Under the pieces are notes generated by a model. That model worked only from the letters and a program-made list of their open reading frames with translations. It ran no database searches and was not told the DNA's origin. This document shows positions 16,714 to 60,200 of a stretch of DNA of 64,000 nt, piece after piece (within the stretch, counting starts at the first letter, position 1; every line of letters begins with the position of its first letter). This DNA comes from Andalucia godoyi And28 (lineage: Eukaryota; Protista; Jakobida): positions 355,468-419,467 of the forward strand of contig VRVR01000009.1 of assembly GCA_009859145.1 (NCBI GenBank). The letters run 5' to 3'. Both the position numbers and the translations under genes were made by a program.

Positions 16714-17067
16714 GAGACGTCGTTGTGCGCTTCGCGACGAACAAAAAGTGCACAGCCCAACCAAACAAAAAACAAAAATCAATGTCGGGATTTTCTTCCG
16801 GTCTTGGCGAATTTTCGAAACAAGCGAAAAGCCCCGAATATCCATAAAAGGAAAAATCGGAACGCGGATCGCGGACCCCGGAGGGTCAAATTTTGTACTT
16901 TTATACCCTGCAACCTCTGAGTTTCCCCCCTTTCCTTTCCTTTTTTTCTTTTTTTTCTTCATCTTTTTTTCTTCCCTTCATATCCATCGTCTCCATTGTC
17001 TTCTTCCTTCATTCTCAACAACCAACTTGATTTTCGTTTGCACCCCCAAACTCCAGATACAAGCGGC

Positions 17068-22621: not shown

Positions 22622-25069
22622 ATGAGCGCTGTCGCGTCTGTTGATCCATTTCTGATATGTGCCCCTCATGAACCTGAGTCTCGTGGACTTTCGCTTCAAC
22701 AAGGCGTTTCGTCCAGAGTATACTTTGCTGTACTGCGAGGCATGTCCGTTGCAGTTAAACTTTTCTTACCGCGGAATGGAGGACTGGACAACCGAGAGCT
22801 TGGCTTTTTCCGAAAGGAAATGCATGTCTTGCTCTCTTGTCGCCATCCGCATATCGTGTCTATTGTAGGTGTCTCGGATCCTATGCTGAACAGTAACCAG
22901 TACGGCTCGGCATCGAACGAAAAAGACCGCGTGGTTTGGTATGCGATGGAAGCGTTGGACTGCAGTCTTGGTTCGTTTTTACGAGATTACATTGGCGACT
23001 CGAAAAGTCGAACGCGTGCGGCGTCTGTGGAATTTGCGTACACTGTGACGAAGACGGCAGCAGCCCATGTGATTTCCGGGATTCGTTATTTGCACGGAAA
23101 GGGAATAAGCCATGGAGACGTGCAAGTGACGAATGTTTTGGTGTCGGTTGGAAACGCTCATTTTGCAGCCAGGCATGGTGCCGTACTTCCGATTGGGAAT
23201 GCTGGCCATGGTCTCGTTTTCAAACTGTGTGATGTGAGCTATGTGGACGGAGAGGATCAATGTGAACGTGACCTGAAAGGATATTCGAAAATTCTCTCTT
23301 CGATGCTTCTGCTTACTCCGAATCGCAGCTTGATTTGGTTGGAGCAGATCGCCGATCTTTTTGGTCGGCCTGTGAGTCCGATGACGGTTGTCTATTGCGA
23401 CTGGCTGATTCAGTGTGAAGCGCCAATGAAGTGCCTCTTGTCCAAGGATTTGATCTCGCCGTGCTACTCGTGTGGTGCTTTTCAGGTGCCTGCGCTTCTT
23501 GCAGAGAGGTTTTCTTACTTGGACGACGGTGGTCGCGTTCGTCCAGTGAACGAGTATGTCGATCTGCAATGGGCAATCCCCCCTCGTCAATTTTCATCCT
23601 GGAGGTCAGAGTTTCAAGAGTGTCTTGGTCCATTGGTGGAGAAGGAGTTGCTTGCTGTTGTTGCAAGTCGCCCAGACGATAAGGAGGTTCCGTTGGACAG
23701 GTCTTTTCAGGTCCAGGAAAGTGTGGAGCACCTGTGGCATGTTCTTCCGAGCCCGGTCTTTGCGGAGGAATACAAGTCACGTGTGGAGTACTGGGTTGAG
23801 AAAACCGACCCGTCTGTCAAACCGCAAGTATACTTCAACGAGTTTACGCTGGCTTTGAAAGGGTATTCGAAGCAGCGATCTGCGGAAGGACAGTATTGCA
23901 AGACGACGTTGCTCATGGGTGCCAATACATATGTGCATCAAAAATCTGTGTCCGACCTTTGGAAAATCAATGGCTACAAAACGGTGTTGGTAGGGAAAGA
24001 TGAATATACGGACATTCGTCAGGTGCATCCTAGATGGAGTACGTCTTTTGGAATCCAAATCGCAATCATCAGTTCAGACGGCTACTACCTGCTTCGTCGG
24101 CGTGGCCACCTGAGTCAAGTAAGTACGTCTCCTCGCGTCTGGACCTGCCCGGTTGTGGAAGGCTTCAATCTCAAAGATATTGGGAGAGAATCCAAGATGA
24201 CGCTCTTGGACGTTTGTAGACGTGCATTGAAAGAAGAGGCGAATATACTCGATCTGCCTGACAGCATGTTTCCTCTGTTTTATGTTGGCGGTCTGTTTTT
24301 GAAACTCGATACGGGGGAATGGGGATGCTACGGAGTTCTGGATTTGAGAAAACTCGGTCCACAGTGTTTAGAATGGAATGCAAGTTCCTTGGCCGCGAAA
24401 TTCTGTTACGCACAAGATGCATCGGAATTTGGCGTAGACTGCCATCGGATACCAGTGTCGCAGGATGAACTGGCAAGATATCTCGTTCAGAATGAGGCGT
24501 CACTGGCCTCGTCGACCTTGCTGACGACCTTAGAGTTCTTGATCGCCGAATTTGGAGAGACCTCCATGAATTCTGTTTTCCAGCGGGAACATAGTGCGAA
24601 CCGTAATCGCTTGGAAGAGTCATTGAACGAAGGACGCTACGCTGAAGGTCCGGCAATGCAACGGAATGCAACTGTTACCGTCGAGCGCTGTGTTAGTTCA
24701 CTGCAAGAGGGTCCGCAGTTCTCGGCTTCGACCAGTCGCTTGGAATTGATTTTGCGCAGGACCGAGGCTGTTGTCCTCAGTGGCGCTGCTCGCATTTCCA
24801 ATCTCTTCTACGACCCGTCCGAGTCGTCGTTCCGACAAATTCTTTCTTTTTGGCTGTTCGTTGAGACTTCATTTGGTTCAGAACTTGCATCGTTGTGGAC
24901 TGCGCGGAGAGCGAGCGCAAGTCTTCCACAAGATCCTGACATTTTGTCTTGCTTCTTCTACTGTGCTTCTGCTCCAGCCACTCGTGCGTTCTACAACGAA
25001 TGGGTGTCTAGAACATTCGACCATATGAAAGAGCCGCAGTCTCTCGCGGGTGCTCCGAGTCTCTCATGA
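22622..25069 (+). CDS. Protein-kinase-like domain fused to a Nudix-like domain
   Basis: VAVK, EMHVL..CRHPHIV, HGDVQVTNV and KLCDVS (degenerate DFG). C-terminally, YYLLRRRG...WTCPVVEGFN...RRALKEEANI resembles a Nudix box. Confidence 0.75.
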   Translation: MSAVASVDPFLICAPHEPESRGLSLQQGVSSRVYFAVLRGMSVAVKLFLPRNGGLDNRELGFFRKEMHVLLSCRHPHIVSIVGVSDPMLNSNQYGSASNEKDRVVWYAMEALDCSLGSFLRDYIGDSKSRTRAASVEFAYTVTKTAAAHVISGIRYLHGKGISHGDVQVTNVLVSVGNAHFAARHGAVLPIGNAGHGLVFKLCDVSYVDGEDQCERDLKGYSKILSSMLLLTPNRSLIWLEQIADLFGRPVSPMTVVYCDWLIQCEAPMKCLLSKDLISPCYSCGAFQVPALLAERFSYLDDGGRVRPVNEYVDLQWAIPPRQFSSWRSEFQECLGPLVEKELLAVVASRPDDKEVPLDRSFQVQESVEHLWHVLPSPVFAEEYKSRVEYWVEKTDPSVKPQVYFNEFTLALKGYSKQRSAEGQYCKTTLLMGANTYVHQKSVSDLWKINGYKTVLVGKDEYTDIRQVHPRWSTSFGIQIAIISSDGYYLLRRRGHLSQVSTSPRVWTCPVVEGFNLKDIGRESKMTLLDVCRRALKEEANILDLPDSMFPLFYVGGLFLKLDTGEWGCYGVLDLRKLGPQCLEWNASSLAAKFCYAQDASEFGVDCHRIPVSQDELARYLVQNEASLASSTLLTTLEFLIAEFGETSMNSVFQREHSANRNRLEESLNEGRYAEGPAMQRNATVTVERCVSSLQEGPQFSASTSRLELILRRTEAVVLSGAARISNLFYDPSESSFRQILSFWLFVETSFGSELASLWTARRASASLPQDPDILSCFFYCASAPATRAFYNEWVSRTFDHMKEPQSLAGAPSLS

Positions 25070-30253: not shown

Positions 30254-33200
30254 ATGGTTCGGAAATCTCCACAATCATCTTCAGCTGCAACAGCTCCTGC
30301 ATCAGCTTCTGCACCAGTTTCTGCACCGGGTGCTGCATCAGATGAATCGAGCGCTCATTTCAGAAACACCACTAGCGCGGATGTTACCTCTCCAAACAAC
30401 CCGCTTCCGCTGCTCCGCCAATTCACCCAGGATGCGACGCAACTTCGACGCGACAACGGCGCAGTGCTGGACCATGGTAAAGAGACACAACTGCTGTCCA
30501 GATTGCTCCGAGAACTGGAGGTCTTTTTGCTGCAGCATTACAAGGCAAGTGGTGTGCCGGTGGTATTGGTGCAAGGATATCAGAGCTCGTCAAAGAGCAC
30601 TGTTGTGAATCGTTTGGCAGGAGAGCCGGTTCTTCCCATGGGGCAGGGTACGTGCACCAAGTTTCCAATTGTCTTAAGTCTGCAGTTTGAGGCTGGCGAT
30701 GACAACTCCTGGACCGCAAAGCTGCTGGCAGAACCGGACAAGCGCGTGCTAGAGGAATCGTCGCGATCAGGGGGTGTTGATCTTCTGCGCTGGCTGGAAG
30801 ACCACTCGGCCGGCAGAGATCTCCGTTTCGACCGAAGCGCACAGATCACGGTGCTGAAGCAAGATGAACGGCAGAGCGTCGTGGTCATCGACCATCCGGG
30901 ATTCTGCCAAAACTATCCGGAAGAAGCCCTCGAACTGTCGCAGAATTCCATTGACAAGCATTTCGGAGGCGGGTCCGAGGAAGAGAGCGACGCCATTCTT
31001 GTGCTTTGCCAACGAATCACCGGCGAAACGGGAGACTCGGGGTGGGACAATCTGGAGCAACTGGATCGCATTCCTGACGGCCGCCTCTTTGTCGCCGTCA
31101 CCATGATGGACACATTCAATCACGCGCAAGTGGCTGAGCGAGTGCGCGCCATCCGAAACCTGTCGCGAAACGACAGAGCGCAGCTCACTCAACTGGACAT
31201 CCTGCTGGCGCTTCAGGAGGAGATTCAGCGTGCAACGTCCAAACAAGACCCAGCGAAACGAGTGCTGCCCCGTGGCACGCGGTTCTTCTTTGTCGCGGGA
31301 TCCAAGGTTTCGTCAAAGGATTTGCTGTCAAACAAGCGGCAGACAACGTGGAGGACGTTCTTGGACAGCGAAGACGAGAGTCTCGCCAGCTTTCTGGACG
31401 AATTTTCGGATCAGTCGAAGTGGCTGGCAGAGTCCATCGAGTTGATTCCGATGACGAACGCGCAGCAGAAGGTATTTGACGAGATGGTTGGCATGGACTG
31501 CCTGGTCTCGGCCGTGCATGCAAAGCACATGGAAAGCGGGATCCGCACGGTTCGAAAGGTTGAGGGGTTCTTGCGGGCGCGACTGGAGGAATGCGAGTTC
31601 CAGGCAAGTGAACTGTATGCATGCAGCCAGTCCCTCCTGGACGTCTCTTCAACAGTGGTCGCCTTTTTGGAAGACTTTGCCGTGCAATTTCTCTCGTTGA
31701 GTCGAGAACAGCCGTTTGACGTGGAGACTGCAACGGTGATGCATTCGGCGCATCCTCTATCCACCGAAACAGAAGCCACGGTTCGACAGTACTTCGACCA
31801 TATTACGAAGTACCACGGATGGACAACCGAGCAGGAGATGGAACTCTGCAGAGAACACATTGGACTGGAGCCGGACAGCTTCCCTCCGTCCCGGTACATG
31901 GAGAATTCGAATGGCGTGAAAAAGATGACAGAAAGAATCGCGCGTTACGCCCGAAATGCGAAGAGCAACCTCTCCACGCTTCCAAGACTGAACCACCGCC
32001 ACGGGCAAGAGATGGCGATCCGACTGGTCCATGTGCATGTCCAAGATCTTGACATGGACCACATGCTGAAGAAAAGCCAACAGAACCCTGGGATGATCGG
32101 CGGAAATCTGACTGAAGTGCTTGCAGTGGTCGTGCAGCGGCAGTACGACGATATCTACCGCGGAGTGCCTCGCTCCGTTGCTGAAGGAATGGACTCACTG
32201 GCTGCTAACTCGAGTACCAACGGTGCTTCGACTTTCTTTGCAACACGCATGGCAACTCAGTCCTTGCTTCATGGACAGTCAGTCCTAAACTTGCTGCTCA
32301 TGGTGCCGAAGTATGCTGCACTCCTCGACCCTTCTGGAAGCGTTGCGTCCAAGATCAAGTCCACACGAGACACGCCAGTCTTCCTGGTCGAGCGCGTTGC
32401 TGAGTACTCAGGAGTGGGAGGTCGAGGTGGAGACCGTCTGCGTGAAAAGGCACTGCGAGATGCAAGAATGCGCAGGTCTCTTGAGGAACCAGACGTCGGA
32501 ACATTCGCAGACTTGCTGTCGAGCTATCAGAAACCAATGGCGAATGCATTCAACTGGTCTGGAGACTTTGCGAGCTTGCGGGAGATTGTGGAGCGAGTGG
32601 CGATCGCAATGTACTTCGACGCAAAGCTGCTGGGAATGAAAGAGCGACTGGAATCGCTGGGAGATTCATTTCGGGTGACCCTCTCGACGGTGAATCCGAC
32701 GCTGACCGCGTGTTCCTCATTGTTCATCCACCAGGACCCGGCTTTCCTCTCCGAATACCGACGTACGTTCCCCATGTCACACTTCGTTCGTGCGTTTCTC
32801 AGCAAGGGCGTCGACGGTGCAGACGATATTTCAATTCTGGAGGCACTGATTCAGGAGATCAAAGCAACTGGCGGCACGCTGCTGGACATGGATGAGCACG
32901 ACACTGATTCTATGTACAAGTACGCGGACAAGGATGCCGAGTTGTTTTTCAATCTTCCGAGAGCGGTGAGATTCTTGCTGTCTGCGACGCAGTGTCTGCC
33001 GGCGTTGGATCGCGACGCTCGTTCCAAGCTTGTTGCCATGTTACCACGAGCGCAATTTACGCCGGATTGCCCAGTTCCGCTGCAGAGCATCAGCGATGTC
33101 AACAGGTTTGACACTGCCTCGTTCAACCACGTCAACCGCAGGATCATCTCCACTTCGTTGTTTGAGTACCATTTGGCGGCATGCCGGATTGCTTCCATGG

Positions 33201-33763
33201 TGCTGTATGCCGACACTCATTCAGGCGGCACAAAACGCCGGGTGTTGGAAACGCTGGAAAGGGTGTTGTCCTTGTTGCTCGGATACCCGTATCCGTATTT
33301 GGAAAGCGAGCGGCCTCAGGAATTGTACTACCTGGAACCGGACAGCATCATCCGCTTCGTACACAAGCACATGAAAGAACTGATCGCTCTCTTCCACCGC
33401 AAGCCAAACGATGCTGTTGCAGCGTTGGGTGGCGACAAGCCGATGGTGCTTCGTTGCGCACTTTACGGCCAGTCTCCGTTGTTCCGCCATCTCGTTGGGC
33501 TGCTTGTGGATGCTCCGTCGACTGCAGACTTCCATGTTGAGATCAAGGGGCACTACAAGAGACTGGCTACCGAAGGAGAAAGACTCGGGTATGTCCGAGA
33601 ACTCGTGAAGTTTCTGCTTTCACAGTCGTTCAAGAAGCTGGATGCGCGCTCCGATGTTGAGAAGAAGATCGCCGTTCTTGAGTCTGAGCGGACAGTCTAC
33701 GCAGAGGCCAAACAATCCTTGGATCTGATGAGGCGCCGGTTGGACAACATGTTTGCTTCCTAA
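30254..33763 (+). CDS. Dynamin-superfamily GTPase, divergent P-loop
   Basis: G1 VQGYQSSSKS, G2 CTKFP, G3 VIDHPG, G4 VTMMD, followed by a long helical region. 1169 aa. Confidence 0.85.
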   Translation: MVRKSPQSSSAATAPASASAPVSAPGAASDESSAHFRNTTSADVTSPNNPLPLLRQFTQDATQLRRDNGAVLDHGKETQLLSRLLRELEVFLLQHYKASGVPVVLVQGYQSSSKSTVVNRLAGEPVLPMGQGTCTKFPIVLSLQFEAGDDNSWTAKLLAEPDKRVLEESSRSGGVDLLRWLEDHSAGRDLRFDRSAQITVLKQDERQSVVVIDHPGFCQNYPEEALELSQNSIDKHFGGGSEEESDAILVLCQRITGETGDSGWDNLEQLDRIPDGRLFVAVTMMDTFNHAQVAERVRAIRNLSRNDRAQLTQLDILLALQEEIQRATSKQDPAKRVLPRGTRFFFVAGSKVSSKDLLSNKRQTTWRTFLDSEDESLASFLDEFSDQSKWLAESIELIPMTNAQQKVFDEMVGMDCLVSAVHAKHMESGIRTVRKVEGFLRARLEECEFQASELYACSQSLLDVSSTVVAFLEDFAVQFLSLSREQPFDVETATVMHSAHPLSTETEATVRQYFDHITKYHGWTTEQEMELCREHIGLEPDSFPPSRYMENSNGVKKMTERIARYARNAKSNLSTLPRLNHRHGQEMAIRLVHVHVQDLDMDHMLKKSQQNPGMIGGNLTEVLAVVVQRQYDDIYRGVPRSVAEGMDSLAANSSTNGASTFFATRMATQSLLHGQSVLNLLLMVPKYAALLDPSGSVASKIKSTRDTPVFLVERVAEYSGVGGRGGDRLREKALRDARMRRSLEEPDVGTFADLLSSYQKPMANAFNWSGDFASLREIVERVAIAMYFDAKLLGMKERLESLGDSFRVTLSTVNPTLTACSSLFIHQDPAFLSEYRRTFPMSHFVRAFLSKGVDGADDISILEALIQEIKATGGTLLDMDEHDTDSMYKYADKDAELFFNLPRAVRFLLSATQCLPALDRDARSKLVAMLPRAQFTPDCPVPLQSISDVNRFDTASFNHVNRRIISTSLFEYHLAACRIASMVLYADTHSGGTKRRVLETLERVLSLLLGYPYPYLESERPQELYYLEPDSIIRFVHKHMKELIALFHRKPNDAVAALGGDKPMVLRCALYGQSPLFRHLVGLLVDAPSTADFHVEIKGHYKRLATEGERLGYVRELVKFLLSQSFKKLDARSDVEKKIAVLESERTVYAEAKQSLDLMRRRLDNMFAS

Positions 33764-46100: not shown

Positions 46101-49100
46101 TTACCTAGGATCATTTTCCGACATCTCTATTCTACTCCTCAGCGCCTGGCCACCCATCACTGCAATGTCAGCGGATTGACTATGTAAGGTAGAAGAGTAA
46201 TTTCGAATGCGATTGTTGCATATGTTCAACTTGCGATCAGCAGCAATATCATTGATCAAGACACTACTACTAGAATTGTACTCTATCACGCAACGGCGAA
46301 GAACACCATATCCACCAGGAGCACCAAACAGCACACCTGCATCATTATCGAAAACCTGACAATCTTCCATGACGAGAAATGGGCGACCTTCAGCACAGAC
46401 CTCATCCGCCTGAACGACAACTCCTTCTGCTTCATTTTTGTGAATTTTGCATCGTCTGAGAATCGTTGCACCGCAGCCAAGAAGAACACCAGAATAACGA
46501 GGATTTGAACCACATCTCGTAATTTCGCAGTCTTCCATGGTCAATCGGCGCGCTCCTTGATAGATAAATGCAGATTGGTGACCACAATCACGAAAATGAC
46601 AATGCGTAAATGTGCCTTCCGACGCAGCTCCACGCAACTCTACAGCAGCAAAGCGAAAATTTTTGAACAAGCAATGTGTGGCCGTTGCATGGCTTCCTCC
46701 TTCAATGACAATACCAGCAGAGCAGAATTTCTTGAACTTGCAATTGTCTAAAGAAATGGTAGTCCCTAATCCCGTTGTTGCGATGCAGGGAGCATCCGGA
46801 TTGAAAAAACGACACCCCACAAAAGTGGCAGTTGCTCCGTCCCCCACGGAAACGCAATTCGACGGCATCCCGTTTCCTTGCCCACATGTGATCAGCAACT
46901 GGATATTTTGTACAACAACCTTGCAAGACGATCCAGTCACAGCCAAGATCATCGCATTTCCGATCCCGAGCCGCTTCATAAATGCAGCTGAACAAGCAAT
47001 CGAAGCGACGGGATGCTGTTTTGCAAGACCATTCTTTGCAAGCTGGGAATAACAGGCTGTCGACGATTGCCCAAGTAACTGTACAACCACTGAACCAATA
47101 ACGATTGAAGGAAGAGGAATAGTCATCAATGCTGGGTTGATAGCATCATGAGCATCTCCGTTTTGCAAACCACCATGGAAATGAAGAAGTTCCTCATACA
47201 CTCCTTCCAGGAGGAGGACACTAATTCCAGAGCAACCCGGATGATCCGCGACCACAGTGGAAACTGCATCGACAATGGATACGAAATTAGCAATGTCATT
47301 TGCAGTTGGAGAGACGACAACAAAATTGTCTTTGAATAGAACATCTTCCCAACAGAACAATCCCCCGATTCGTTCCATTTTGACCCCGGGGGTTGTCGGT
47401 ATGGGAGAATCCTTCGGGCATGTTTCAAGAATCTGAAGACGCAAAGCCGTGAAAGACTCCAGAGCACTACCACAACCACAGGCAATCCCCTTCTCGACGG
47501 CGACCAAAGCTTTCTGGGTGTTTTGCTTCCCCATCTCAGCCTGTGCCAGACGATAGTGACCTTTGATCGATGTAGGATCGAAACGTAGAGCAGCCAAGGC
47601 ATCGCGTGAAGCCAATGTAAACATACCCAATCGAATGTACGCAAGCGATCGATTAGCGAGAATCATCGATGCGGTGGACGGATCTTCGATGTTTTGGGCA
47701 TGCATCTTGCTGTACACTTGGATCGCGTTATTGAGATTACCGCTTTCAAACAGCAATTTCGCCAACGGCCGCATTGCTTCGATGAACGACAATGCCGGAT
47801 CCAAACCTGGTGCACTTTGACTCTTTTTTGGAATACGAGCCCGAGAAATGTTTGTGAGGATTTCACATCGAGTCTTCGCCTCACAATCGCAAGGCGGGAA
47901 GCATTTTAGCATATTCCTCTCTAAAGCGAGCCCGCGTTGGAAGCATGCTTCACCACGAAGAAAAGATGTTGAAACATCTGAATGTTTGCTACTTAACTCG
48001 AGGAGAGCTAGTCGATACAATGCTTCACAATACTTGCGACCCTCTGGAGCTGCAAGATCGAGAAACTGTTGAAGGCGAGTCCTCTGGAACTCAACATCGG
48101 AAACACGAATATTCGAGCACGCGACAGCACACCAATAATGGAACATGGGTTCCTCTGGAGCGATTTGTGATGCCTTTGCGTACGCATCTAAACAAGCTTG
48201 AAAATCTCCCTGATTGCCGCAGACACTTCCCATCATGTGCCAACATCCGTATGCATCCCGAGGATTGACGGCAATTCCACGCTTGCAATGCTCAATCGCT
48301 TCCTTGCAACGCATCGTATTGAACGCAATCGATGCCAATAATAGCATTGCATCAACATTCCTGGTGTCTGACAAAAGGACAAGACTCGCGGCATTGGTGT
48401 ACCGCGATATGTCACCGTTGCTTGTAGTGTAACAACCCGAAAAAGGATCTCCATCAGAAACCGATGAACGCAGTGAAAATGCAAAGAGTCTTGTTGCTTC
48501 ACTGACGTTATCAGCAAACAATGCCATTTCTCCCTGAATCCATGTCGTGCGAGTTCGTAGCATTCGCCCCGCAACAGTGGATCCTTGTTCTGCCCACACA
48601 GACAAGTCTCGTAAAACCTCAGGACGAAAGCTTTGAGGTAGTTGCCGGGGCAGTTCGTCCTCCTTCTTGTCGTCATCGGGGGTGACAGACACGTACTTGA
48701 ACCATGCATGTCCAGGCTTTGCAACGATTTGCAATAGTCCAACGTACCTCTCAATGCACTTGGTCTGAGAAGAGTGCTGGGTAGAACTAGATGCCTCACT
48801 GCTTCCGTCCTTCATTGCATCTTGACCACCAAAACCTTCAAGACCGGATCGAAATGCATAAGGATACATTTGACGATGTTTCAAGGAATGCTGAGCGTCC
48901 AACAGCCATTCGGGAATCGGTCCAGCAGGTGAGGAAAAAGTGTCCAATGCTTGAAGCAACAGCCACGATTGTATGTCCCGGGGAGTCCGAAACCCTTTGC
49001 CCAAAACGATTCGCGAAATAACAAACAGTCGCAAAATGCTTCGGAAATACAGTTGCAATTGCTTCCGAACTGTTTTCCACCACTTTTCACGCATCCATTC

Positions 49101-49736
49101 CGAATTTTCATCCACGGTCACCTGCAAAATGTCAACAGCAATCCGCATGCACTGGGCGGTAGAGGGTGCTTCATTTCGCTGTTGATGAAAGAAGAAGACC
49201 CTTTCCACAAGCGATTCCAGAAACATCCCCGGAACTTTCTCGTGCTCAAACTGGCGAGACACGAATTTCAAGACTCGCACAGCAGATTGTGCAACAGGAA
49301 ACTTGTCCAACGAAGTGGAAGCCAGCGGACGCTCTCCATACTCAACAGTATTTCCGAAGACAACATCGTAATCGACAGCAGCCTTGATGTGAATCGCAAG
49401 TTTTCCAAGCTTGACGTGATGCGGATGAAAACACGGATGCTCTTGGAGGCGCTCCACGAAACGCTCCCTCTCTTGCAAAGTGACTGGCTTGGGTGTAGAC
49501 ACATATACGTCGACATCACTGGAATGCACAGTTGTCCCTTTCTTGGCACTCCCTTGAATATCTGCCGAACTTTGAGGACCAAACATGGAAACTGCAAGAT
49601 CGTGAAACACTTTGACATGGGCTTTCACGAGGCCGGCAGCAAAACCAGTGACCATGCACGAGTTGGCCATGTCTGAAAGGAATGCATCGAAAATGATGGA
49701 TTCCTCTGGATGCACGTAGTCCGACAATCTGATCAT
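46101..49736 (-). CDS. CD-NTase/OAS-like nucleotidyltransferase fused to TPR repeats and a right-handed beta-helix
   Basis: ATG at 49736. NTase motifs QGSAKKGTTVHSSDVDVYV, YDVV and SAVRVLKF...PGMFLESL. TPRs include LANRSLAYIRLGMFTLASRDALAALRFDPTSIKGHYRLAQA. Parallel beta-helix repeats include ATFVGCRF, ISLDNCKF and TILRRCKIHKNEAEGV. Confidence 0.88.
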   Translation of the reverse strand: MIRLSDYVHPEESIIFDAFLSDMANSCMVTGFAAGLVKAHVKVFHDLAVSMFGPQSSADIQGSAKKGTTVHSSDVDVYVSTPKPVTLQERERFVERLQEHPCFHPHHVKLGKLAIHIKAAVDYDVVFGNTVEYGERPLASTSLDKFPVAQSAVRVLKFVSRQFEHEKVPGMFLESLVERVFFFHQQRNEAPSTAQCMRIAVDILQVTVDENSEWMREKWWKTVRKQLQLYFRSILRLFVISRIVLGKGFRTPRDIQSWLLLQALDTFSSPAGPIPEWLLDAQHSLKHRQMYPYAFRSGLEGFGGQDAMKDGSSEASSSTQHSSQTKCIERYVGLLQIVAKPGHAWFKYVSVTPDDDKKEDELPRQLPQSFRPEVLRDLSVWAEQGSTVAGRMLRTRTTWIQGEMALFADNVSEATRLFAFSLRSSVSDGDPFSGCYTTSNGDISRYTNAASLVLLSDTRNVDAMLLLASIAFNTMRCKEAIEHCKRGIAVNPRDAYGCWHMMGSVCGNQGDFQACLDAYAKASQIAPEEPMFHYWCAVACSNIRVSDVEFQRTRLQQFLDLAAPEGRKYCEALYRLALLELSSKHSDVSTSFLRGEACFQRGLALERNMLKCFPPCDCEAKTRCEILTNISRARIPKKSQSAPGLDPALSFIEAMRPLAKLLFESGNLNNAIQVYSKMHAQNIEDPSTASMILANRSLAYIRLGMFTLASRDALAALRFDPTSIKGHYRLAQAEMGKQNTQKALVAVEKGIACGCGSALESFTALRLQILETCPKDSPIPTTPGVKMERIGGLFCWEDVLFKDNFVVVSPTANDIANFVSIVDAVSTVVADHPGCSGISVLLLEGVYEELLHFHGGLQNGDAHDAINPALMTIPLPSIVIGSVVVQLLGQSSTACYSQLAKNGLAKQHPVASIACSAAFMKRLGIGNAMILAVTGSSCKVVVQNIQLLITCGQGNGMPSNCVSVGDGATATFVGCRFFNPDAPCIATTGLGTTISLDNCKFKKFCSAGIVIEGGSHATATHCLFKNFRFAAVELRGAASEGTFTHCHFRDCGHQSAFIYQGARRLTMEDCEITRCGSNPRYSGVLLGCGATILRRCKIHKNEAEGVVVQADEVCAEGRPFLVMEDCQVFDNDAGVLFGAPGGYGVLRRCVIEYNSSSSVLINDIAADRKLNICNNRIRNYSSTLHSQSADIAVMGGQALRSRIEMSENDPR

Positions 49737-49926
49737 TTTGCAATAGTTTGCCAAACTAATAGTAGGTGAGAAAAAGAAAATGCGAAGTCGAGGATTCTGT
49801 CGGAGGATCTCTATGAATTGACCCACATGCACATTGAGCACCGCAACGATCCTCGTGGGTACGACAGGCACACATAAAGATTGTCGACTTGTCGTTTGAC
49901 TGCCGATGTTTGGACTTTTTATTGAA

Positions 49927-50763
49927 CTAAGGACGAGCGGCACGGTTCTTCAGGATTGATTGACGAACTTCTTCTGCATGCGAGAGACTGTCGGTGTCAG
50001 GCAGCGGATGTGTGGCATTTCGAGCCACTGCCAGACAGTTTTCAAGGTCGTTCTTGGAAAGACTGTTGTTGCAAAAATCCAGAAGCAAAGAGTTCCATGA
50101 TTCTTCGAGATTGCTCGCACGTCGAAGATAATAGTATCGCGCACGCAAGATCTCATTCTGGAATCGCAGAAATGGAGAAATAAGCAGAGGTGGAAAAACG
50201 GAAGAGACGGAAACGAGGAGCGATGGAGCAAAAAAGATCCCTGTAGCTGAAGCAATTCCAGCCACTCCAGACGCGATCACGATATAAACCTCCAAGTCTC
50301 TTTGAAGAGCCTTTGCTTGTTCGAAGAGAGCGCCTTTGGATTCTTGCAAGTCGTTGTCAAATCCCTTGAATTGTGAATGGAGGTTCTTCTTCCACTCTGA
50401 CCATTGGGACACCATCAATTTCTTACTGTCTGCCTTTTCTTTTTGAAACTCGGTCACATCCTGGAAAACGTTCCTGCCGCCGTGGAGTCGTTTGTAATAG
50501 GATGCATCAGAGACATAGTCACGCGCCAGATTGCATTTGGTCTGCATCATCTCCTTGAGAGAAGCGATCACGTCGTCTCCATAAGCAACGTGCTCCGAGT
50601 TGCGCATTTCAGAATCCAACGAGTCAAACTTGTTGAGAAGTTGCCTGTACAAACGACTAGCATCAGAGTGTTCTTTTTGCCAAGCTTCGAGATAATCAGA
50701 TAACTGAATAGTGCTAATCGTAGAAGTGACAAGCGTTGACAACGCAGCAGTAGCTCTCAACAT
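49927..50763 (-). CDS. Helical-bundle/coiled-coil protein with one hydrophobic hairpin (candidate membrane effector)
   Basis: ATG at 50763. Amphipathic helices lead to a 41-aa uncharged stretch VYIVIASGVAGIASATGIFFAPSLLVSVSSVFPPLLISPFL. AATAAA lies just after the stop. Confidence 0.7.
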   Translation of the reverse strand: MLRATAALSTLVTSTISTIQLSDYLEAWQKEHSDASRLYRQLLNKFDSLDSEMRNSEHVAYGDDVIASLKEMMQTKCNLARDYVSDASYYKRLHGGRNVFQDVTEFQKEKADSKKLMVSQWSEWKKNLHSQFKGFDNDLQESKGALFEQAKALQRDLEVYIVIASGVAGIASATGIFFAPSLLVSVSSVFPPLLISPFLRFQNEILRARYYYLRRASNLEESWNSLLLDFCNNSLSKNDLENCLAVARNATHPLPDTDSLSHAEEVRQSILKNRAARP

Positions 50764-51031
50764 CTTGCTCGACGAGAACCGAAACGTCAACGTTTGCAAG
50801 CACACAGTGAAACCAGCTGAAATACATAAACCAGACAACGTAATCTTTTGGATTTTGGAAATAAAATCGCGTTCTGATTCGTGGCATTCGCACGCAATCA
50901 GCGTACCTCGGCGTTGATTCCAATACAAGGATCTCAAGGAAGGTCTGGTTGGATCGTGAACACGTCAGAATCAGAGTCTGGAAATCAAAGAGCTCGTGAT
51001 GGAAGAGCATACCCGTCCCACTTTTTTGGTT

Positions 51032-52366
51032 CTACCGCGTGGTCGCCCGCAGATGGCGCAACAGAAAATAAAGACGTGAAAAGACCCATGCTGAAACGGC
51101 TCTCAGATGATGTATGAATGAAGGAAAGGAGAAAGAAGGACAAGGAAGCCAAAACATAGTAGAAATGTCAAGTATGGGATTCTGCACCTGCACGATTTTG
51201 CAGAAGATCGAGAATTTTACGTGTACAGCAGGCGAACTAATAAAGTTCAAAAAAAAAATAAAATCCCTCAACAACAGACATGAAGTCCCATATCGAAAGG
51301 CCGAAAGAATATCTGCAATATCTGCCGCCAAACGATAACGAGCAGCAAGCCGCTGTCGTTCATGCTGTGTACGTAAAGGCACCTGCGGCTTAAACTTGGC
51401 AAACATATCTACTTGCTGATCATATGGATCGGCCAAACAGGAATAGGAAGCACATTTGAACAAACAAAGGAGGGTACGAATGAGCACTCTTTCGTACAGA
51501 TAGCTCTTGTCGGCAAGAGGAAAGTCGGCAATGGATGCCAACACTGCTTGCTTGATGGAAAATGAAGAAACTTGCCTCCAAAACGCACGTTTCTGCACAT
51601 TTCGCAGATGCTTCACGGTACGAATCACGTCGTGAAAAGCAGGGAACGACTGTCAAAAGGAAGACCATAAGATTCGATGATAAGGTTAGGCAAAAACAGC
51701 AAAGAGACATACGTTGACAGCAACGACGGTGGAACGATGCTCATCATCAAGATGACAATCGTCCCATGCACTGTCGTTTTTGCGTGAAGGAACTTTCCAT
51801 TTCCCATCCTTCACAATTGCGGGCAGCAAGTCGTACTCGAATCCTTCCGTGTTCTCGACTTCGACGGAGACGCGGTTTCGGATCGCGCTGCGAATTCCAT
51901 CCTGCTCACGGACAAATGATGCAAACTGCTTCAATACGGTGCGGGAAGCCGGTTCTGGAGCAGAAGACTCCAACATGATACGACAGAGTAGATCCACATC
52001 CGATCCAGAGGGGACGTCCAGGCCCTGAATCGAACTGCCGGCTAGCTTGATCCCTCCCGTCAACTTATAATTCTTCTGAAGAAACTTTTTTGTCAAATTG
52101 CGCTCTGCAACAGGACGACTGGGAGAAAGAATGCGTCTCATGCGGTCTACGAGCTCGCTACGTGCTTGCTGTTGCTCGGGTCCCAGGCGAAGACGACTCG
52201 ACACAGGCTTCAGACGCTCTCGAAGAGACTTCAAAACATCGATTGACACTGAATTTTGAAAGTCGTCAGCAAACATTCGACACTTTGCTAGGAATTCATC
52301 CACATGAGCTTCCACATTCTGGAAATCGTTCGCAAACCGGCGACACTCCTCTGAAAATGGCACCAT
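51032..52366 (-). CDS. Stand-alone CD-NTase/SMODS/OAS-like nucleotidyltransferase, two exons (52366-51713, 51649-51032; 3' end uncertain)
   Basis: AGSSIQGLDVPSGSDVDLL and EYDLLPA. Splicing gives AVN/SFPAFHDVIRTVKHLR...SSFSIKQ...CLADPY. Confidence 0.85.
51650..51712 (-). other. Spliceosomal intron (63 nt)
   Basis: GTATGT donor, CCTAAC branch motif, CAG acceptor. Removing it joins the 52396 and 51628 ORFs in frame. Confidence 0.9.
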
Positions 52367-52562: not shown

Positions 52563-55500
52563 TTATTGTGACATATAGCGACTCTTGCATCTCTTGAAGA
52601 GGTCCAGCGCATTAGAAGGTGAAAGAGCTATCCAAGAGTCTAACAGCTCAATGTACGCCTCCTTGGTAGACCGATTTTCTTCTTCTCGAAGACGACGCAG
52701 CACATCTGAATCGGGATCATTGGGAGCTGGAAACCTCGCGGCAGTACCCGTCCTTTGGAGAGAGGCAAGGATGACGCGAAGACATCCCTGAAACAGCTCC
52801 ATGAACGTCTTTGAATTCCAAGCTTCAGCGAGGATATTGGATGAAAAGGCTATTGCTGCTTGCTCGAACGCACATGAGGGTATCTGAAGGTTCAAATGAT
52901 GTGCCTCCATTTTGTTCACCAGCTTCAAAACCTTGATGACATCACAAAAACCTTTGTAAAACTTATTTAGTTCCTCAATCTCTCTGCGAGCGGAAATATT
53001 CCGCGACGTTTTGAATTTTCCCTCTTTCCCATCGAGAAGGAGGAACATACCAGTCGAGGTCTGCAAAGCGGGTAGCACATCCACTTGCGCAACGTCGGAG
53101 TTGTGTGGATCTCGAAGTGACACCGAGAATCGAATCTTGCCGTCTCTACGACAACTTTCCAAAACAACCATTTCACTACCTTCAGATTGCTCCTGAAGGA
53201 CATTACGCAATGCATGAGCAACAATGTTTCCGAGCAGTATTACTTCCGCCAGCTGCACGGGTTTGTTAGCTGGATGAGGCCATGTTGCACTCATTAAGGA
53301 GGCATTGTACTCAACACGTGCGGCGAGATCCGAGTTCAAAATCACCACCATATCCATATCAGGATCGAAGAGAGCCGTTTGATTTCCGATACTACCACAC
53401 AATTCGCTTTTCGGCACCAAGTTCAAAGAAGGTAATTCGTTGGAACGTGCTTGGAATAGAGTGGCCCAAGTAGAGCAAATCGCAGTACTTAACGATTCGA
53501 AGAACCTGTTGAAACGACGAAGCCGACTGTTTAGAAGGCTCTCGTCTGACTTGAGTTGAGACGCAAAGTTCCACAAGTCGATATCCTCTCTGGTTTTTCC
53601 CAGACGAATGGAACTGAGCAGATTTTGTATTGCATTCGAACTCTCTTGCAGAAAACGTGACGCATGCTCCCGTGGATTAGCATCTTGTAGGAACGCCTTT
53701 GACCGAATAGAAATGTGTTCTGAACCAATGTCATTCGGTGAGCCTCCAGAAAATGGAGTTGTGTCTCCAGAAGGTGCGGAGTTTGGACGCAAGGAACGCT
53801 CTGTCCTCTGAGCATGACCACCGCCAAACATTGAAGTAGGCTCATATACACCGTCAACCAGCACCACTTCCTCACACGACAGCACAGATTTCGACATCGG
53901 ATCCTGTTTCAGAAAAGCGTCCAAAAGCTCAACGAAATCCGGTACTTCCGTCGCATGAGGGTCAGACAGGATATCAAAATGGAAAATGGACGAGACTCCT
54001 TCCTCACGATCCAGCCGAATTCTGCATTGCACAGAGCTGCTAGAATAGCCCACTATCACGTCCAGACCGAATGCCGGGGGATGGCCACGGGAAAACAAAG
54101 GAAACAATAAAGAATGAGTTCCCAAGTACGTTATGAACCGCCAGAAATGCAGATCCGTCACAACACCGTCAAACATTCCAGTCAAGACTCCATCCCCAAC
54201 ACATCGAACTGAAAGCGAAACCGGAGCAGCCGCAGCAGAGTTGGAGCATATCGACTTCCAGCGAGTGTCAAGAGTATCCTGAGCATGCGAGTGCAGATCG
54301 CAATGACGGTACCACTGAGGGAAAAATACAAGTTTGGATTCTTGGTCCATTGGAACCACAACGCCAAGCGTGACCAACATCCCAATAACCTGTTCCGCAA
54401 CTAACCTGTGAGAATCAGCAGGGCAAAACTTGTTGGTCCGAAGATGCTCTTCCAGATTGGTTTTCGCAATTTCAAACTGAACAATACCCGCATTCTCCAA
54501 CAAATCCTTGTAGACAACACTCTTGCTATGACCAACATGCTGCAGTCCGCCTTTTCCATCGGTTGGTGGAATTAGTTGAGCACACGTACGGATGAAGACA
54601 TCGGGTCGCAACACGATCATGTGTCCATCCGACGAACATGCAAAGAAACATCCGAGCGCGACTAGATCATCAAAACAGCTCTTCACCTCGGCATTGGTCT
54701 TGCACACACTGGCAATGCCAGGAATTCGATCGCGAATGCTGTCTACTGCGAGAATTACATCTTTGCAATCCCTGCACATCTGCTCGAGAACAAGGTTCCG
54801 CAGAAGAACCTTTGGCAATCGACGATGAAAGTCTTCAATCGTTTTCGAGAGCCACTCCATCATTGGCTTCTGACCGTTCTTCCGCTGACGCCTGTCGTTT
54901 TCCACAACGATAAACCATCGATCATTTGAAAATTGTCGAATTTCAAAGAATGCATTGAACTGAGGTTTCTTGAGAACCTTTCCCAAACACGCATTGCAGG
55001 CATCCAGAAACGTCTTCTGCCAGTTCCATTCTCGGGACGAAAGAGAACAACGAACCTTTTCCCACCAAAAAGTAGCATACGAGTTACCATGCGTGCCGAT
55101 GAGAACCACCTTCGACATCAATTTCTGTTCCTTGGAAGCATGGCACGCACCAAGATTGGCAATGATGCGCAGCCACGAAATGATATTACTCTCGATTGCC
55201 TTCTCCAGTGTCCCGGTTTGATGGGCAACATAAAGATCGCGTAGGCTAAACACACAAAAGTACAGAGATTGCTTGCCGAAGAAGAGCGGATCAAACACGC
55301 GAAATACGTTCTGACCGGCGAAATCAAGAACGCTCACTGATAGCGTGTCTCCATCCAGATCTGTCAATACTCGAGCGGTGACGTCGATGCGTTCGCGAGC
55401 AGTGACTTTTTCGCGAGCAACATTCGGCGATGGTTGCCAGGAGGAGGGAGTGACGATCGATTCAGCGACATCCTCAACCTCACCTTCTGCATCAGCAACT

Positions 55501-56975
55501 TGCGGTGAAGCTGGCGAGATCACAGGTAATTCCACTGTACTCGGTTGCAGGGTGGAGGAACCATCAGTATTTCGAAGTGGCGACCTCAACTCTTGTATCT
55601 GCTCTGCGACATATCGATTCATCAGCCGTGACAGCAACGTTGTTTGCTTACCCTCTGTTGAATCTGTCCACACATGTTTTCGTATGGATATCTCGAGCGT
55701 TCGCACATCACCAACTTCCGTGGATTTCTCCGTGGGATCAAACAGTGTTCCACCAGATGACAGATTCTTGATCAGACTCGTCTTTCCCACTCGTGCATCT
55801 CCAACGACCAGCAGACGCACGCGCGATGATCGAGTCCAAACATGGTCCTCAATGTCGATCTCGGAAACATCAATCCGCACTTCCCTTGTACTAGGAATGG
55901 GAAATGCCAGCGGACGCGATGCATCAACGTCATCCAGTAGAGATCCATTCGACAACACATTGGTTTCTGCTTCCACGGAATGCACAACATTGTTGCGCAC
56001 GAGATACCCGGCAGACGACAGCTTAATATCGAACCCGGATTCGGACGACATGGAAGACACTGCGCGGCAACGAGCACTCACACCACAATCAGCTGCAGAA
56101 ATGAGATGCATGATTTCTGTTGATTTTTCAACATTGCCTCCAATTGCAAGAATGCGATTGTCAATGCACACCGCTGCTCCATACGATTGTAAGACATTCA
56201 AATCTGGACCAGGAAATCACTTGTTCATTCGAGGCTCGTAAATCTCGACGTTCCTACGCCCATTTCCTCCAATGGTATAGATTAAACCATGGACAATCAC
56301 TGCAGAATGTCCAGACCGACGCATACTCATCGACGCCACAAACGACCACTTTCCCTCTCGAAGATCCACCCTCTCAACACTGGAGAGCCCAACAACAACC
56401 GAGTATCCACCAATCGCATAAATGCATTCGTGCATGTGATCAGCCACAGATGCAAACTGCTTACGACCCACATTCATGGAATTCAATTCGAGTTCCCATT
56501 GGCTGTTCTGCGGATGGAACGTCTCAACAGAAAAGCGGTTGTCCGGCAAGGAATTCCCGCCAAGAACGTAGATGCGTCCATTCAAGGATACTGCACAATG
56601 GCTGGTACGAAAAACCCGCAATTTGGGACCAAGGAGTCTCCACTGTCCATCGGCACCATCTTCAAGACGGTACACATCTTTTCCTCCAACACAGAAAATG
56701 GCGCCATTGAGTTCAACGGCCGTCCAGGAGTGAGGAAAATTATCATTCAGAGACGGATCTCTCGTCCACCTCCATACCGAAACATCGCTCGACGTGGTCG
56801 TATCGAGGATCTCGACTTGACCACCATTGCCGATCGCATAAACACGACCATTTGGTTTCACAACTGCAGACCAGTAAGTTTGAATCGTCTGTAAACGTGG
56901 CCCAGGCATCCAAACTCCATGGGATTCATCTCGTCGATTCACTTCTTTCCACAGCTGCACCAAATTCTCAGTCAT
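52563..56975 (-). CDS. Kelch propeller - Roc - COR - CD-NTase/OAS-like fusion with one in-frame TGA (56217-56219)
   Basis: Six Kelch blades (GG...W). Roc LLVVGDARVGKT, DFAGQ and VVLIGTH, then COR-like helices. NTase CGSIGNQTALFDPDMDMVV, VDVLPA, FCDVIKVLK, PSCAFEQ and PNDP. The two ORFs are in the same frame, separated by TGA plus FPGPD. Confidence 0.85.
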
Positions 56976-57213: not shown

Positions 57214-60200
57214 AATGACTGCCCGACTCAGGGCACGCACTTTTTCCCCTTGAGTCGACGGTCCCAAAAATGTCAGCGTCCGGCCTCAATTCCTTCCAAA
57301 AACACCACCAACAATGTGCTGCAGCAAAAGTCGGCCGAGTCCGTGGACTCTGTGCCTCTGCGCCGCGGATCGGTAGCAATAAATATCTCGAGCAACAGAC
57401 AACCGCGCCTTATCGAACATGAGCAACTTATCCGACGCAGCTCCGTCTGTCGAACACGATGACGAGTTTGATCCGTTTACGATATTACAAGTATCTGCGA
57501 GTGGTACAGTAGCAGTTCCCGATGTTACCGTGTCGTGCAAACTGCAGGTCATTGGATTGAATGGCTGGTACCCCGAGTGCTGGGATGTTTCCAGGCGAAC
57601 CGTTTCTGCGGATACCTACTCGCAGCATCTCTTGAAGGCAGTCTCCCTTGTCTCTGTGGATCTGCTACAAGGCGCTCTCAAGCCAAAAGGAATGCCCGAG
57701 AAAACATGGAAGCTGGACATCAGAGGAGATTCCTCTGATCCCACCGCCGCGAATAGTGTTGCAAGGCCGACCGTTGTTTCCCATCAAGCGTATATCTGCC
57801 TTTCAAGAATGCTGGAGTGTTTGTGGACCTCCATCGACTACAGAACGGGCGGCAAGCCCACGAAACGACGCGGGGGCGACGTGGAGTATTGGGTGTGTCC
57901 GTTTGGAAGAGAATCTCGGAAAAGCAAGGAAGGAGTGAAGGGCCTTCGGGCACTTGACAGAAGACACAAGGATTGCGGATGTCCTGTGACATATCGGGTC
58001 TACGAGCTGCCTGCAGTGGCATCGACAGAGGATCATCCAATCAGCATCGTGTACGAAATGGGTGTTCACAATCACAATCCGCTATCGACTCAACACTTGC
58101 AAACAAACAGTATTGATAACCGGCTTCAACAGCAAATTATCAAATACGCAGAACAGGGACTTCCCGCAGCTCAAATTCACAAGCTGGTGTTGACGAGCGC
58201 ATTGTCTGCTGTCGGAAATGTTCGCAGAGACGGGATTGACATGTTCTATGATCAGCGACTGTTTCCATCGTACGATTCGATCGTTAAGATCATCAATAGA
58301 AGAAGATTGACAAGTCGCTCAGATGACAGGCGGTTCGTGGAGCGAATTGCCGCTGAATTGCCTCAAAATGTTTTCATCGACAGCATGTTCGAAAAGACTC
58401 CGGATGGCAAGATCACATCCCACCTGGTTCTGCGGGTGGGAAGTCCTGTGTGCAATGAGAGCCTGAAAAGACTGATGCCTGGAGGACTAGTGCTGATAGA
58501 CTCCACTCACAATCTGAATGATTACGCCTACCAAGTGTTCACTGTGATGGGTATTGATCCCCGCACACTCGAATCTCGAGTCCTCGAGCACTTGATTACG
58601 TCGTCTGCGGATTGCGAGACGTTGGAGCGCTGGTTACGAAGTTTGGCAGAACGAGCTCAGGGGACACCTGCCGAGGTTATTGAGGATAAGTGTCGAACGC
58701 AGACTCCGGCAATAGAAAAGGCTTGGCCAGAAACGCACATTCACTACTGTTACTTTCACAGTATGAAGACCTTTCGAGAAGAGTTCACCAAAGCTGGCGA
58801 GCAGCAGAGGCAACAGCTGTTGTCTTGGCTGCGGCGCATATACTATTCCAGAGATCCCCAGGTTTTGTCCGAGAACGTTTTCCACTTGGAAGCGTTCTTG
58901 GAACGAAACAATCTCAAGGACTGGAAACAGTACTGGGAATCCAACTGGGCGAATTGCCTGTCACGTTGGACTCGTTGCCACTCGATATTCAAATTTGTTG
59001 GTACGAACAACCACCTAGAGTCTTACCACAAAACTCTGAAGCACGCGAAAAAGGCGGCAGGTGGACGGCGGATATTGGCTGTTTTTGATTGCGTTGTCCT
59101 GTTGCTACAGCAGCAATTTTGGAACAACAACAAAATCTTGGAAAGGGCTACAAACCATTATCAGAAGAGTCACCTCGAAGACTTCAGACGACGGATGACC
59201 AAAAGTTTCGGAAATGCTCGCTGGTGGGCAGTACGCAAGCTGCTTGTCGACAGAGGACAATGGTGTCAAACTATTCTTCGTTGCCAAATACAAAACAGAT
59301 TTTGAACAAAATGAGAACCTTGAGGAAACGCAGGAGGAAAACGATATTCAGGACAACGTGAAAGAGGTCTACGAAGTGCGTTTGGGAGACGGAGTATGTG
59401 CGTGCACGTGTCCCGCGTTTGTTGAAAAGGAGATTCCGTGGTGCAAACACATGGCGTTCTGCGCCGCTGAGGATAGTATCGACGTCTTGTACTATCCTTC
59501 TCCTCAGGACAATATGCAGACAGTGGTGGACGAGATGCTCAAATGGGCACAGCGGGAGAACGGAACCATGGGTGAGAACAACGGACGTATACCGATCGGT
59601 GAGCGCATATTTGGCCCATTGGAATGGCCAGCAGCACTCCAGAGAGGGTGGTCAAGTCGACGAAGAGCAGGCAGAAGCGCCAGTTGAAGATGCAGGACCC
59701 TCTGGTTCAGGTACGTTTCAGACTCTGGCACATCAAGATGTGTGGAATGCACGGGAAAGAGCTCGAGGAAACTTGCAACGGCTCACTAGAGAACTCAGTG
59801 TGATTGACATGCAGGCTCCGAGTGTGCTTGGTTACCTTGATGATCTGGACCGCACACTGTCCGCGCAAACAGTGCCGCCCTCACTTCATCTACCAGTCGC
59901 TTCTAATTGTCATGGGTGTATTCGTCCAGCAGCCGGTTTTGAACGTACGGAAAAGAAACGTGGAAGAAAGAAAGCAGATCAAAGTGAGGAGCTTGTAAGG
60001 TGGAATGCCGATTTGAATGTCGACGAGATGTGCAGGGCGTGGACCGAAAGAGGGGAGGCAACACAAGCTCGAGCCCCGTCAAAGAAGAAGCGCCGAGCAG
60101 AAGCGTTTTCTCAGCTTGCTTCACCAGGCAACGAACAAAGAAATCAACAGGAAAAACAAGGGTTTAACGGTGGTGATGCGGCGGGAAACGCCGAGAGCAC

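Follow-up and report, generated by a model that had tools for sequence, protein, structure and literature searches.

The gene analysed in this work lies at positions 46101 to 49736 (minus strand) of a 64,000-nucleotide stretch of contig VRVR01000009.1 from the jakobid Andalucia godoyi And28 (hereafter the window), and it is intact and apparently intronless, joining in a single predicted chain a nucleotidyltransferase (NTase) domain, two blocks of tetratricopeptide repeats (TPRs) and a parallel beta-helix. The alignment of its relatives, and a structural model built from that alignment, indicate that the N-terminal 290 residues are a bilobal NTase of the polymerase beta (pol-beta) type with the metal- and triphosphate-binding residues intact, and they place it in a separate family, closest among characterised enzymes to the CD-NTases (cGAS/DncV-like nucleotidyltransferases), namely the bacterial enzymes CdnD, CdnE, CdnG and CdnB. 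The fusion of such an enzyme with a conserved TPR and beta-helix module would constitute a so far undescribed variant of CD-NTase-like enzymes. We give an even chance to the reading that the protein is a one-chain sensor-synthase, in which the enzyme would produce a small signalling nucleotide under the control of the C-terminal module and the partner bound to it.

Nucleotide second-messenger immunity is known in animals and bacteria (cGAS-STING, OAS and the cyclic oligonucleotide-based antiphage signalling systems, CBASS), and to our knowledge little has been learned about it in most other eukaryotes. The family described here, with members in jakobids, amoebozoans, stramenopiles, chytrids and a lycophyte, would offer a concrete and clonable candidate with which to ask whether nucleotide signalling exists in these lineages and what triggers it.

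The gene and its product

The features assigned to the gene are the following (the evidence for each is given in brackets).

46101..49736, minus: target gene, complete coding sequence of 1211 residues plus stop in one exon (open reading frame call; homologues collinear from the first to the last domain)
48867..49736, minus: predicted bilobal, CD-NTase-like NTase domain, residues 1-290 (AlphaFold2 model, Foldseek, family profile against the PDB)
49509..49553, minus: catalytic motif G62-S63-AKKGTTVHSS-D74-V-D76, containing the GS loop and the first two metal-binding carboxylates (family alignment)
49365..49367, minus: third catalytic carboxylate, D124 in VDYDVVF (at least 90% conserved; on strand 122-127 of the model)
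49215..49268, minus: C-lobe motifs LK157 ... PGxxLE174 (E174 invariant; aligned to CdnD and a CdnE homologue)
48435..48584, minus: linker motif, residues 385-434 (the best-conserved segment of the family)
48057..48416, minus: TPR block 1, residues 441-560 (TPR_2, ANAPC3, TPR_19)
47427..47831, minus: TPR block 2, residues 636-770, predicted to be a domain of three TPRs like the "carboxylate clamp" domains of Hop, PP5 and CHIP (PDB matches)
46104..47036, minus: right-handed parallel beta-helix of about ten PbH1-like rungs, residues ~926-1190 (PF13229; rung periodicity)

The open reading frame (ORF) spans 46101..49943 on the minus strand, and its first ATG, at 49736, gives a protein of 1211 residues, with a computed mass of 133 kDa and a computed isoelectric point of 7.3. 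Because the consensus N-terminus of the family (xxLxxxVxxxEAxxF) aligns with the first residues of the target (MIRLSDYVHPEESIIFDAF), the start codon is likely to be the one at 49736, with no intron needed. The three-part layout which the initial annotation had read from the nucleotide sequence (an NTase, two TPR blocks and a C-terminal beta-helix) was recovered in full, and no sequence sign was seen of the splicing considered there, which would remove the NTase domain from the transcript. The ORF next to the target is 100% identical to ANDGO_06074 of A. godoyi, and the window accordingly appears to be nuclear DNA of this jakobid. Its genome is reported to be compact (~20 Mb) and largely free of introns, those present being of the GT..AG type and 55-756 bp long (PMC7050145); both the gene density of the window and the 63-nt intron proposed in a neighbouring gene agree with this description. 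The protein is probably cytosolic. Nothing resembling a signal peptide is seen by eye at its N-terminus, and its strongest hydrophobic stretch (~866-890) falls within the conserved segment just before the beta-helix rungs. No paralogue was found elsewhere in the 64-kb window with the family hidden Markov model (HMM), and no large internal repeats are present in it, the three 621-residue ORFs that it holds being mutually unrelated.

The nucleotidyltransferase domain

Searched on its own, the target matches Pfam NTP_transf_2 below threshold (E 0.019), its N-terminus gives no match in a single-sequence search of the PDB, and a single-sequence AlphaFold model of it is unusable (predicted local distance difference test, pLDDT, of 42). 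The NTase assignment was tested via its relatives, using an alignment of 27 N-terminal domains. These come from a family collected by a full HMMER scan of residues 1-420 against 1.84 billion representative proteins (E <= 1e-3), which yielded 69 representative relatives, many of them 1000-1500 residues long, the nearest being 38% identical to the target over the query region.

The motif GSxxKGTxxxxSDxD is near-invariant across the 69 representatives. Nine positions of the 27 aligned domains are invariant (G62, K66, T68, S73, D74, D76, I115, E174 and Q205), a further four (S63, D124, K157 and D209) are conserved to 90% or more, and every one of the 27 matches NTP_transf_2, MTPAP-like_central or Polbeta in Pfam. 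With the 27-sequence alignment, AlphaFold2 modelled residues 1-300 at a pLDDT of 90.6 and a predicted template-modelling score (pTM) of 0.87, giving a bilobal structure in which N-terminal helices precede a palm of five strands and the C-lobe is helical. This model has 120 matches in the PDB at E <= 1e-3 (Foldseek), and all of the 50 listed are NTase-fold proteins. The marks of the pol-beta superfamily (GS loop, DVD, third carboxylate and palm fold) are thus all present in sequence and model. The "GS/DVD/D" signature noticed in the initial annotation corresponds to G62-S63, D74-V75-D76 and D124, and the fold, on whose presence in a model that annotation had staked its proposal, is there. Judged from the alignment, the GS loop and the catalytic triad are under strong purifying constraint.

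Relationship to CD-NTases and to RNA-tailing enzymes

The fold class is clear from the model, which structures of poly(A) polymerases (PAP) and terminal uridylyltransferases match about as well as those of CD-NTases do. Foldseek places CdnG (E 1.6e-6) and CdnE at the top, with E ~2e-6 to 8e-6, and the best reciprocal TM-score of the model of residues 1-300 is that with CdnB (0.59/0.60). Close behind these come yeast PAP, Pla1, GLD-2, TUT7, Trf4 and NF45/NF90, with PAP, GLD-2, TUT7 and NF45/NF90 lying within about tenfold of the CD-NTase E-values. The same search against viral structures gave nothing (TM < 0.27), and so no support for a giant-virus relative.

Sequence separates the subclasses better than structure does. 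In the search of the family profile against the PDB, the best match is CdnD (9ntn, E 1.2e-7), aligned over 172 positions (12-183 of the profile), which cover the N-terminal helices, GSVAKRTYVDGLSDVDCLV opposite the catalytic motif, and, in the C-lobe, the motifs LK and LE; the second is a CdnE homologue (6e0m, E 1.1e-5). The C-lobe motif is aligned to LSGYHIESLAI in the former and to SSFFIECLV in the latter. The best natural protein outside the CD-NTases is Trf4 (E 2e-3), and OAS1 appears at E 0.09. Additionally, the PADLOC model of the CBASS cyclase (PDLC00803) matches 18 of the 27 members, with a best E of 1.6e-8.

It is unlikely, in our view, that the enzyme instead tails RNA 3' ends, as a non-canonical terminal nucleotidyltransferase akin to the poly(A)/poly(U) polymerases, which the TPRs, the beta-helix and (in relatives) a MYND finger would recruit to ribonucleoproteins or chaperone complexes. 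This alternative draws on the MTPAP-like_central matches, which every one of the 27 members gives at E <= 1 and the best of which reaches 7e-6, on the Foldseek matches to yeast PAP, Pla1, GLD-2, TUT7, Trf4 and mtPAP (E 1e-5 to 1e-4, TM 0.45-0.58) and on the appearance of Trf4 in the profile search; with Trf4, GLD-2, TUT7 and mtPAP the family shares the bilobal fold, similar TM-scores and the MTPAP-like_central palm. Unlike these enzymes, however, it lacks PAP_assoc (PF03828), matched by none of the 27 members at E <= 1, an absence which weighs against RNA-tailing enzymes and not against CD-NTase membership. Furthermore, the CdnD profile score is at least four orders of magnitude above that of Trf4, over a longer alignment, and the Pfam scan detected no RNA-binding domain in the target.

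As for the placement among CD-NTases, the likeness to the bacterial CBASS enzymes extends over GSxxK.T....SDxD, the third Asp, the N-terminal helices and the LK/LE motifs of the C-lobe, all of which align. The family differs from them in being eukaryotic, in carrying ~900 extra residues (TPRs and beta-helix), in its mismatch with SMODS and in a diverged C-lobe. Two groups of eukaryotic CD-NTase-type proteins were considered as possible homes for it, and by their Pfam marks it belongs to neither. The first is eSMODS, defined by SMODS (PF18144) as the top Pfam match (Culbertson & Levin 2023, PMC10732462); these proteins are likewise CD-NTase-like and patchily distributed among eukaryotes other than animals, and they too include amoebozoan members. 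SMODS matches just one of the 27 members of the present family, at E 0.3, and the top Pfam matches are NTP_transf_2, MTPAP-like_central and Polbeta. The second comprises the cGAS-like receptors (cGLRs) of animals and OAS, whose Pfam domains Mab-21 (PF03281) and OAS1_C (PF10421) match none of the 27. Animal cGLRs are known to occur fused to TPR or ankyrin repeats (Li et al. 2023, bioRxiv 10.1101/2023.02.22.529553), and the concept of a CD-NTase receptor with such repeats in one chain is thus shared with the present family, one member of which has ankyrin repeats. Unlike cGLRs, the family has no Mab-21 signal and occurs outside animals; the passages of Li et al. consulted make no mention of a beta-helix or of a clamp-type TPR in cGLRs.

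A small family scattered over distant eukaryotes

In at least 12 long members, domain-wise searches gave a common order of NTase, linker, TPR block 1, middle region, TPR block 2, pre-helix segment and beta-helix; since the layout is collinear across the family, it argues for a functional unit and against a chance fusion. Additions to this plan are a C-terminal MYND finger (7 of the 69 representatives), ankyrin repeats (one) and Peptidase_S74 (one). The homologue search, which the initial annotation had proposed together with a look at TPR number, also showed that some of the 69 relatives lack TPR block 1. No MYND-finger exon was found within 2 kb downstream of the stop codon of the target. On three eukaryotic metagenome contigs, the gene is split into co-oriented NTase and TPR/Beta_helix pieces (as given by a prokaryotic gene caller), and MYND pieces are also present on two of the three. 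One of these contigs (L001, 14562-17232) holds the NTase gene a second time, in tandem, with a MYND-finger piece of its own behind the second copy. Beside other relatives lie a divergent TIR_2 gene (L003, 7669-8337) and an ORF with Cas12f1-like_TNB, of the TnpB/Fanzor-like kind (L002, 17146-17766).

The named members include proteins of the lycophyte Diphasiastrum complanatum (under two adjacent locus tags), the chytrid Nowakowskiella, the xanthophyte Tribonema minus and the amoebozoans Paramoeba atlantica and P. aestuarina, the last two found in the transcriptomes of the Marine Microbial Eukaryote Transcriptome Sequencing Project (MMETSP), so that relatives of the target are transcribed. One further member is on a contig labelled "archaeon". 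The named members are annotated as hypothetical or as "TPR repeat protein / predicted nucleotidyltransferase", and from these sequences the family is a small, unnamed and uncharacterised one, scattered over distant eukaryotes. A word-indexed homology search with the full target protein returned only the target itself, and with the family profile five proteins only; looking up the exact target sequence among contigs gave no hit, and a single-protein metagenome scan gave no closer relative, just two spurious matches of 31 residues. Our literature searches, whose coverage did not extend to Burroughs et al. 2015 (said to have defined SMODS and SLATT), returned no description of an NTase-TPR-beta-helix architecture.

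The linker and the TPR blocks

The helical linker motif (GSxVAxRMLxxRxxWxxGE...SLRxSxxDGDPFSG), which is 34-55% identical to that of the relatives, is without a known counterpart and may be a regulatory interface. Both TPR blocks of the initial annotation were found again, at ~441-560 by Pfam and at ~636-770 by profile matches to the PDB. In block 1, Pfam matches TPR_2 at 498-528 (E 2.2e-11) and ANAPC3 and TPR_19 over 452-521; the block is missing from three relatives (P0022, P0026 and P0056).

Among PDB structures, block 2 matches the TPRs of PP5, Hop (STIP1), SPAG1, SGT1 and RPAP3 (E 1e-9 to 1e-6), and its best natural matches are almost all TPRs of Hsp70/Hsp90 co-chaperones, SGTA and CHIP among them. 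The alignment to the PP5 TPR domain (E 4e-9) puts R656, K660, N695, K725 and R729 at the five clamp positions, which we take to be those of K, N, N, K and R in PP5; compared with this pattern, three residues of the target are identical, one is conservative and one is changed, and the family consensus ([RK]xxGN ... NRS ... KxYR) retains all five positions. By sequence, then, block 2 resembles the domains with which Hop, PP5 and CHIP clamp the EEVD tails of their Hsp70/Hsp90 partners. The general design, in which an enzyme carries a clamp-type TPR, is shared with proteins of the PP5, CHIP and Hop type; the differences are that the catalytic domain is here an NTase, that K660 replaces the second clamp Asn and that chaperone binding is only predicted.

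This likeness opens the possibility that the NTase modifies proteins while tethered to a chaperone, by a logic like that of CHIP, PP5 and FICD; block 2 would dock EEVD tails of Hsp70/Hsp90 and the NTase would AMPylate or UMPylate the chaperone or its clients, a reading that we regard as quite unlikely. Besides the co-chaperone matches of block 2 and the clamp pattern kept in the family, it could appeal to the MYND finger of 7 of the 69 relatives, since published work ties the MYND protein ZMYND10 to Hsp90 co-chaperone function. MntA-type adenylyltransferase models also match 12 of the 27 members weakly. As with ZMYND10, SMYD proteins are linked to Hsp90 co-chaperone function. The MntA and aminoglycoside-transferase matches, however, span the generic minimal core only, and the modelled fold is bilobal and CD-NTase/PAP-like, unlike that of a minimal NTase or GlnE; moreover, the target has a Lys at the second clamp position and the large conserved beta-helix would be left without a role. 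Should the enzyme modify proteins, or tail RNA, it would still represent a new and widely scattered enzyme family.

The beta-helix

The assignment of the beta-helix, made in the initial annotation and confirmed here, is unambiguous at the level of sequence: Pfam Beta_helix (PF13229) matches residues 994-1136 with E 8.9e-26 (90.8 bits, for a cut-off of 25.9), and a Cys-x-[FIVL] ladder runs from ~938 to ~1180 with a period of ~23-30 residues, forming about ten rungs. Cys and Gly make up the conserved columns together with R1035, Q1109 and N1131; an acidic cluster of the catalytic kind is not among them, and no solved structure matches the beta-helix in sequence at E < 0.1. In its presumed cytosolic location, it is comparable to FBXO11 and SHCBP1, in which beta-helices (CASH/PbH1) are intracellular binding modules; unlike these proteins, the target has no F-box or other common domain.

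Two other possibilities, that the protein is a scaffold whose NTase is catalytically silent, as in NF45/NF90 or MiD51, or that its active part is a glycan-acting beta-helix, are very improbable even when taken together, since, although NF45/NF90 DZF domains are among the Foldseek matches and right-handed beta-helices are often polysaccharide lyases or hydrolases, G62, S63, D74, D76, D124, K66 and T68 are invariant or nearly so over distant eukaryotes, as would be unexpected for a pseudoenzyme, and the conserved columns lack an acidic catalytic cluster in a protein that by eye has no signal-peptide-like N-terminus.

Among the 69 relatives, one has a Peptidase_S74 match and two have Adeno_E1B_55K matches. 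Peptidase_S74 is the intramolecular chaperone of trimeric phage tailspike beta-helices, and the two kinds of match hint that the beta-helix may trimerise in some members.

Proposed mechanism and its standing

In the sensor-synthase reading, the NTase would condense nucleoside triphosphates into a small nucleotide product, cyclic or linear, acting as a signal, and a partner bound by the TPR/beta-helix module would set the activity or the location of the enzyme. TPR block 2 would most likely clamp a C-terminal peptide that is acidic, like the EEVD tails of Hsp70/Hsp90 or a mimic of them, and the beta-helix would bind a conserved protein or polymer partner. In PP5, the catalytic domain is held inactive by the TPR domain and released when an EEVD peptide is bound, and a control of this kind may, by analogy, operate here. 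The row of CD-NTase-like genes to which the target belongs makes immunity or stress the probable setting. A clamp-type TPR on such an enzyme suggests a link between Hsp70/Hsp90 and a nucleotidyltransferase, of which we found no description in the literature searched.

The initial annotation had proposed a one-component receptor that makes a nucleotide signal upon binding a protein or glycan ligand, and this proposal is supported in part. In favour of the sensor-synthase reading are the fixed and conserved layout (collinear in at least 12 relatives), the constrained active site, the confident NTase model, CdnD and CdnE as nearest relatives with solved structures, the PDLC00803 matches, the lack of PAP_assoc, the match of TPR block 2 to EEVD-clamp TPRs with clamp residues kept in the family, the transcription of relatives in Paramoeba, the adjoining CD-NTase-like genes, the TIR gene beside one relative and the precedent of cGLRs with TPR or ankyrin repeats.

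Several results weigh against it. The mismatch with SMODS, Mab-21 and OAS1_C and the closeness of PAP-like proteins in the structural search have been given above; additionally, the NCBIfam matches are generic (MntA, CCA-adding enzyme and aminoglycoside nucleotidyltransferases), with CBASS_cyclase_b matching 2 of the 27 members, and a profile of the C-lobe alone retrieved no natural protein from the PDB, solely designed helical repeats, which are spurious. The likeness of block 2 to EEVD clamps was not considered in the initial annotation, and the Lys at the second clamp position, canonically Asn, counts in turn against the clamping step. The identity to relatives is 25-43% for the NTase, 25-39% for TPR block 2 and 25-34% for the beta-helix, so that the TPR/beta-helix module is about as conserved as the enzyme and evolves no faster; this similar conservation of all domains argues for a conserved partner and against a fast-evolving, pathogen-binding sensor. 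As to the neighbouring NTases, BLASTP, hhalign and the family HMM found no kinship with the target beyond the core motif. Gene adjacency means little in eukaryotes. Finally, the SLATT signal of the gene between the target and these NTases is faint, and a 77%-identical paralogue of that gene (ANDGO_01901) gives none.

A more ambitious version of the sensor-synthase reading is doubtful but worth stating. In it, the family would be a fourth eukaryotic lineage of CD-NTase-type signalling beside cGLR, OAS and eSMODS, it would couple the recognition of a chaperone or polymer to a second messenger, and the locus would be an "immune island" with a SMODS cyclase, a Kelch-Roc-NTase and a possible membrane effector.

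Genomic neighbourhood

On the minus strand, the target is part of a head-to-tail row of four genes (the Kelch-Roc-NTase, SMODS-like and ANDGO_06074 genes and the target), of which the three neighbours are the following.

49927..51089, minus: ANDGO_06074 (100% identical), 364 residues, between two NTase genes and upstream of the target
51290..52366 (3' end approximate), minus: SMODS/CBASS-cyclase-like gene, for which a GT..AG intron of 63 nt is proposed at 51650-51712 (NCBIfam, PADLOC, Pfam)
52563..56975, minus: Kelch - Roc GTPase - middle region of ~550 residues - CD-NTase-like C-terminus (one frame, with a single TGA)

Two further CD-NTase-like genes are thus found within 7 kb of the target and on the same strand, and three NTase genes within 10 kb are suggestive of a functional neighbourhood, without being proof of one. 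A possible candidate for an adjacent effector, as in CBASS, is ANDGO_06074, which yields just faint matches to SLATT_4 and SLATT_1 (E 0.043-0.081) and in which, by eye, a myristoylation-like N-terminus (MGLFTS, MGxxxS) and two pairs of hydrophobic helices can be seen. The SMODS-like gene matches NCBIfam CBASS_cyclase_b (E 9e-9), the PADLOC Cyclase (E 3e-6) and Pfam SMODS (E 6e-5), and its second exon, after removal of the intron, Mab-21_C (E 0.02); on these matches, it would fit eSMODS better than the target does. Jakobids are absent from the eSMODS lineages named in the sections of the 2023 survey that we draw upon (PMC10732462).

The C-terminus of the Kelch-Roc gene carries GSIGNQTALFDPDMDMVV and gives PADLOC cyclase matches at E ~8e-4. 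Its in-frame TGA (56217-56219) stands exactly where the Kelch consensus wants a Trp (...VEIYEPRMNK*FPGPDL...); a nonsense mutation, a polymorphism and a sequencing error are the candidate explanations for it. Just past the row of NTase genes, on the plus strand, there is an ORF for a transposase of the MULE/Mutator type (57419-59305). Elsewhere, the window holds two Dynamin_N GTPase ORFs on the plus strand (16996-20271, 1091 residues, and 30254-33763, 1169 residues), an ORF with many Ephrin_rec_like repeats (1115-5626) and one for a kinase (22622-25069).

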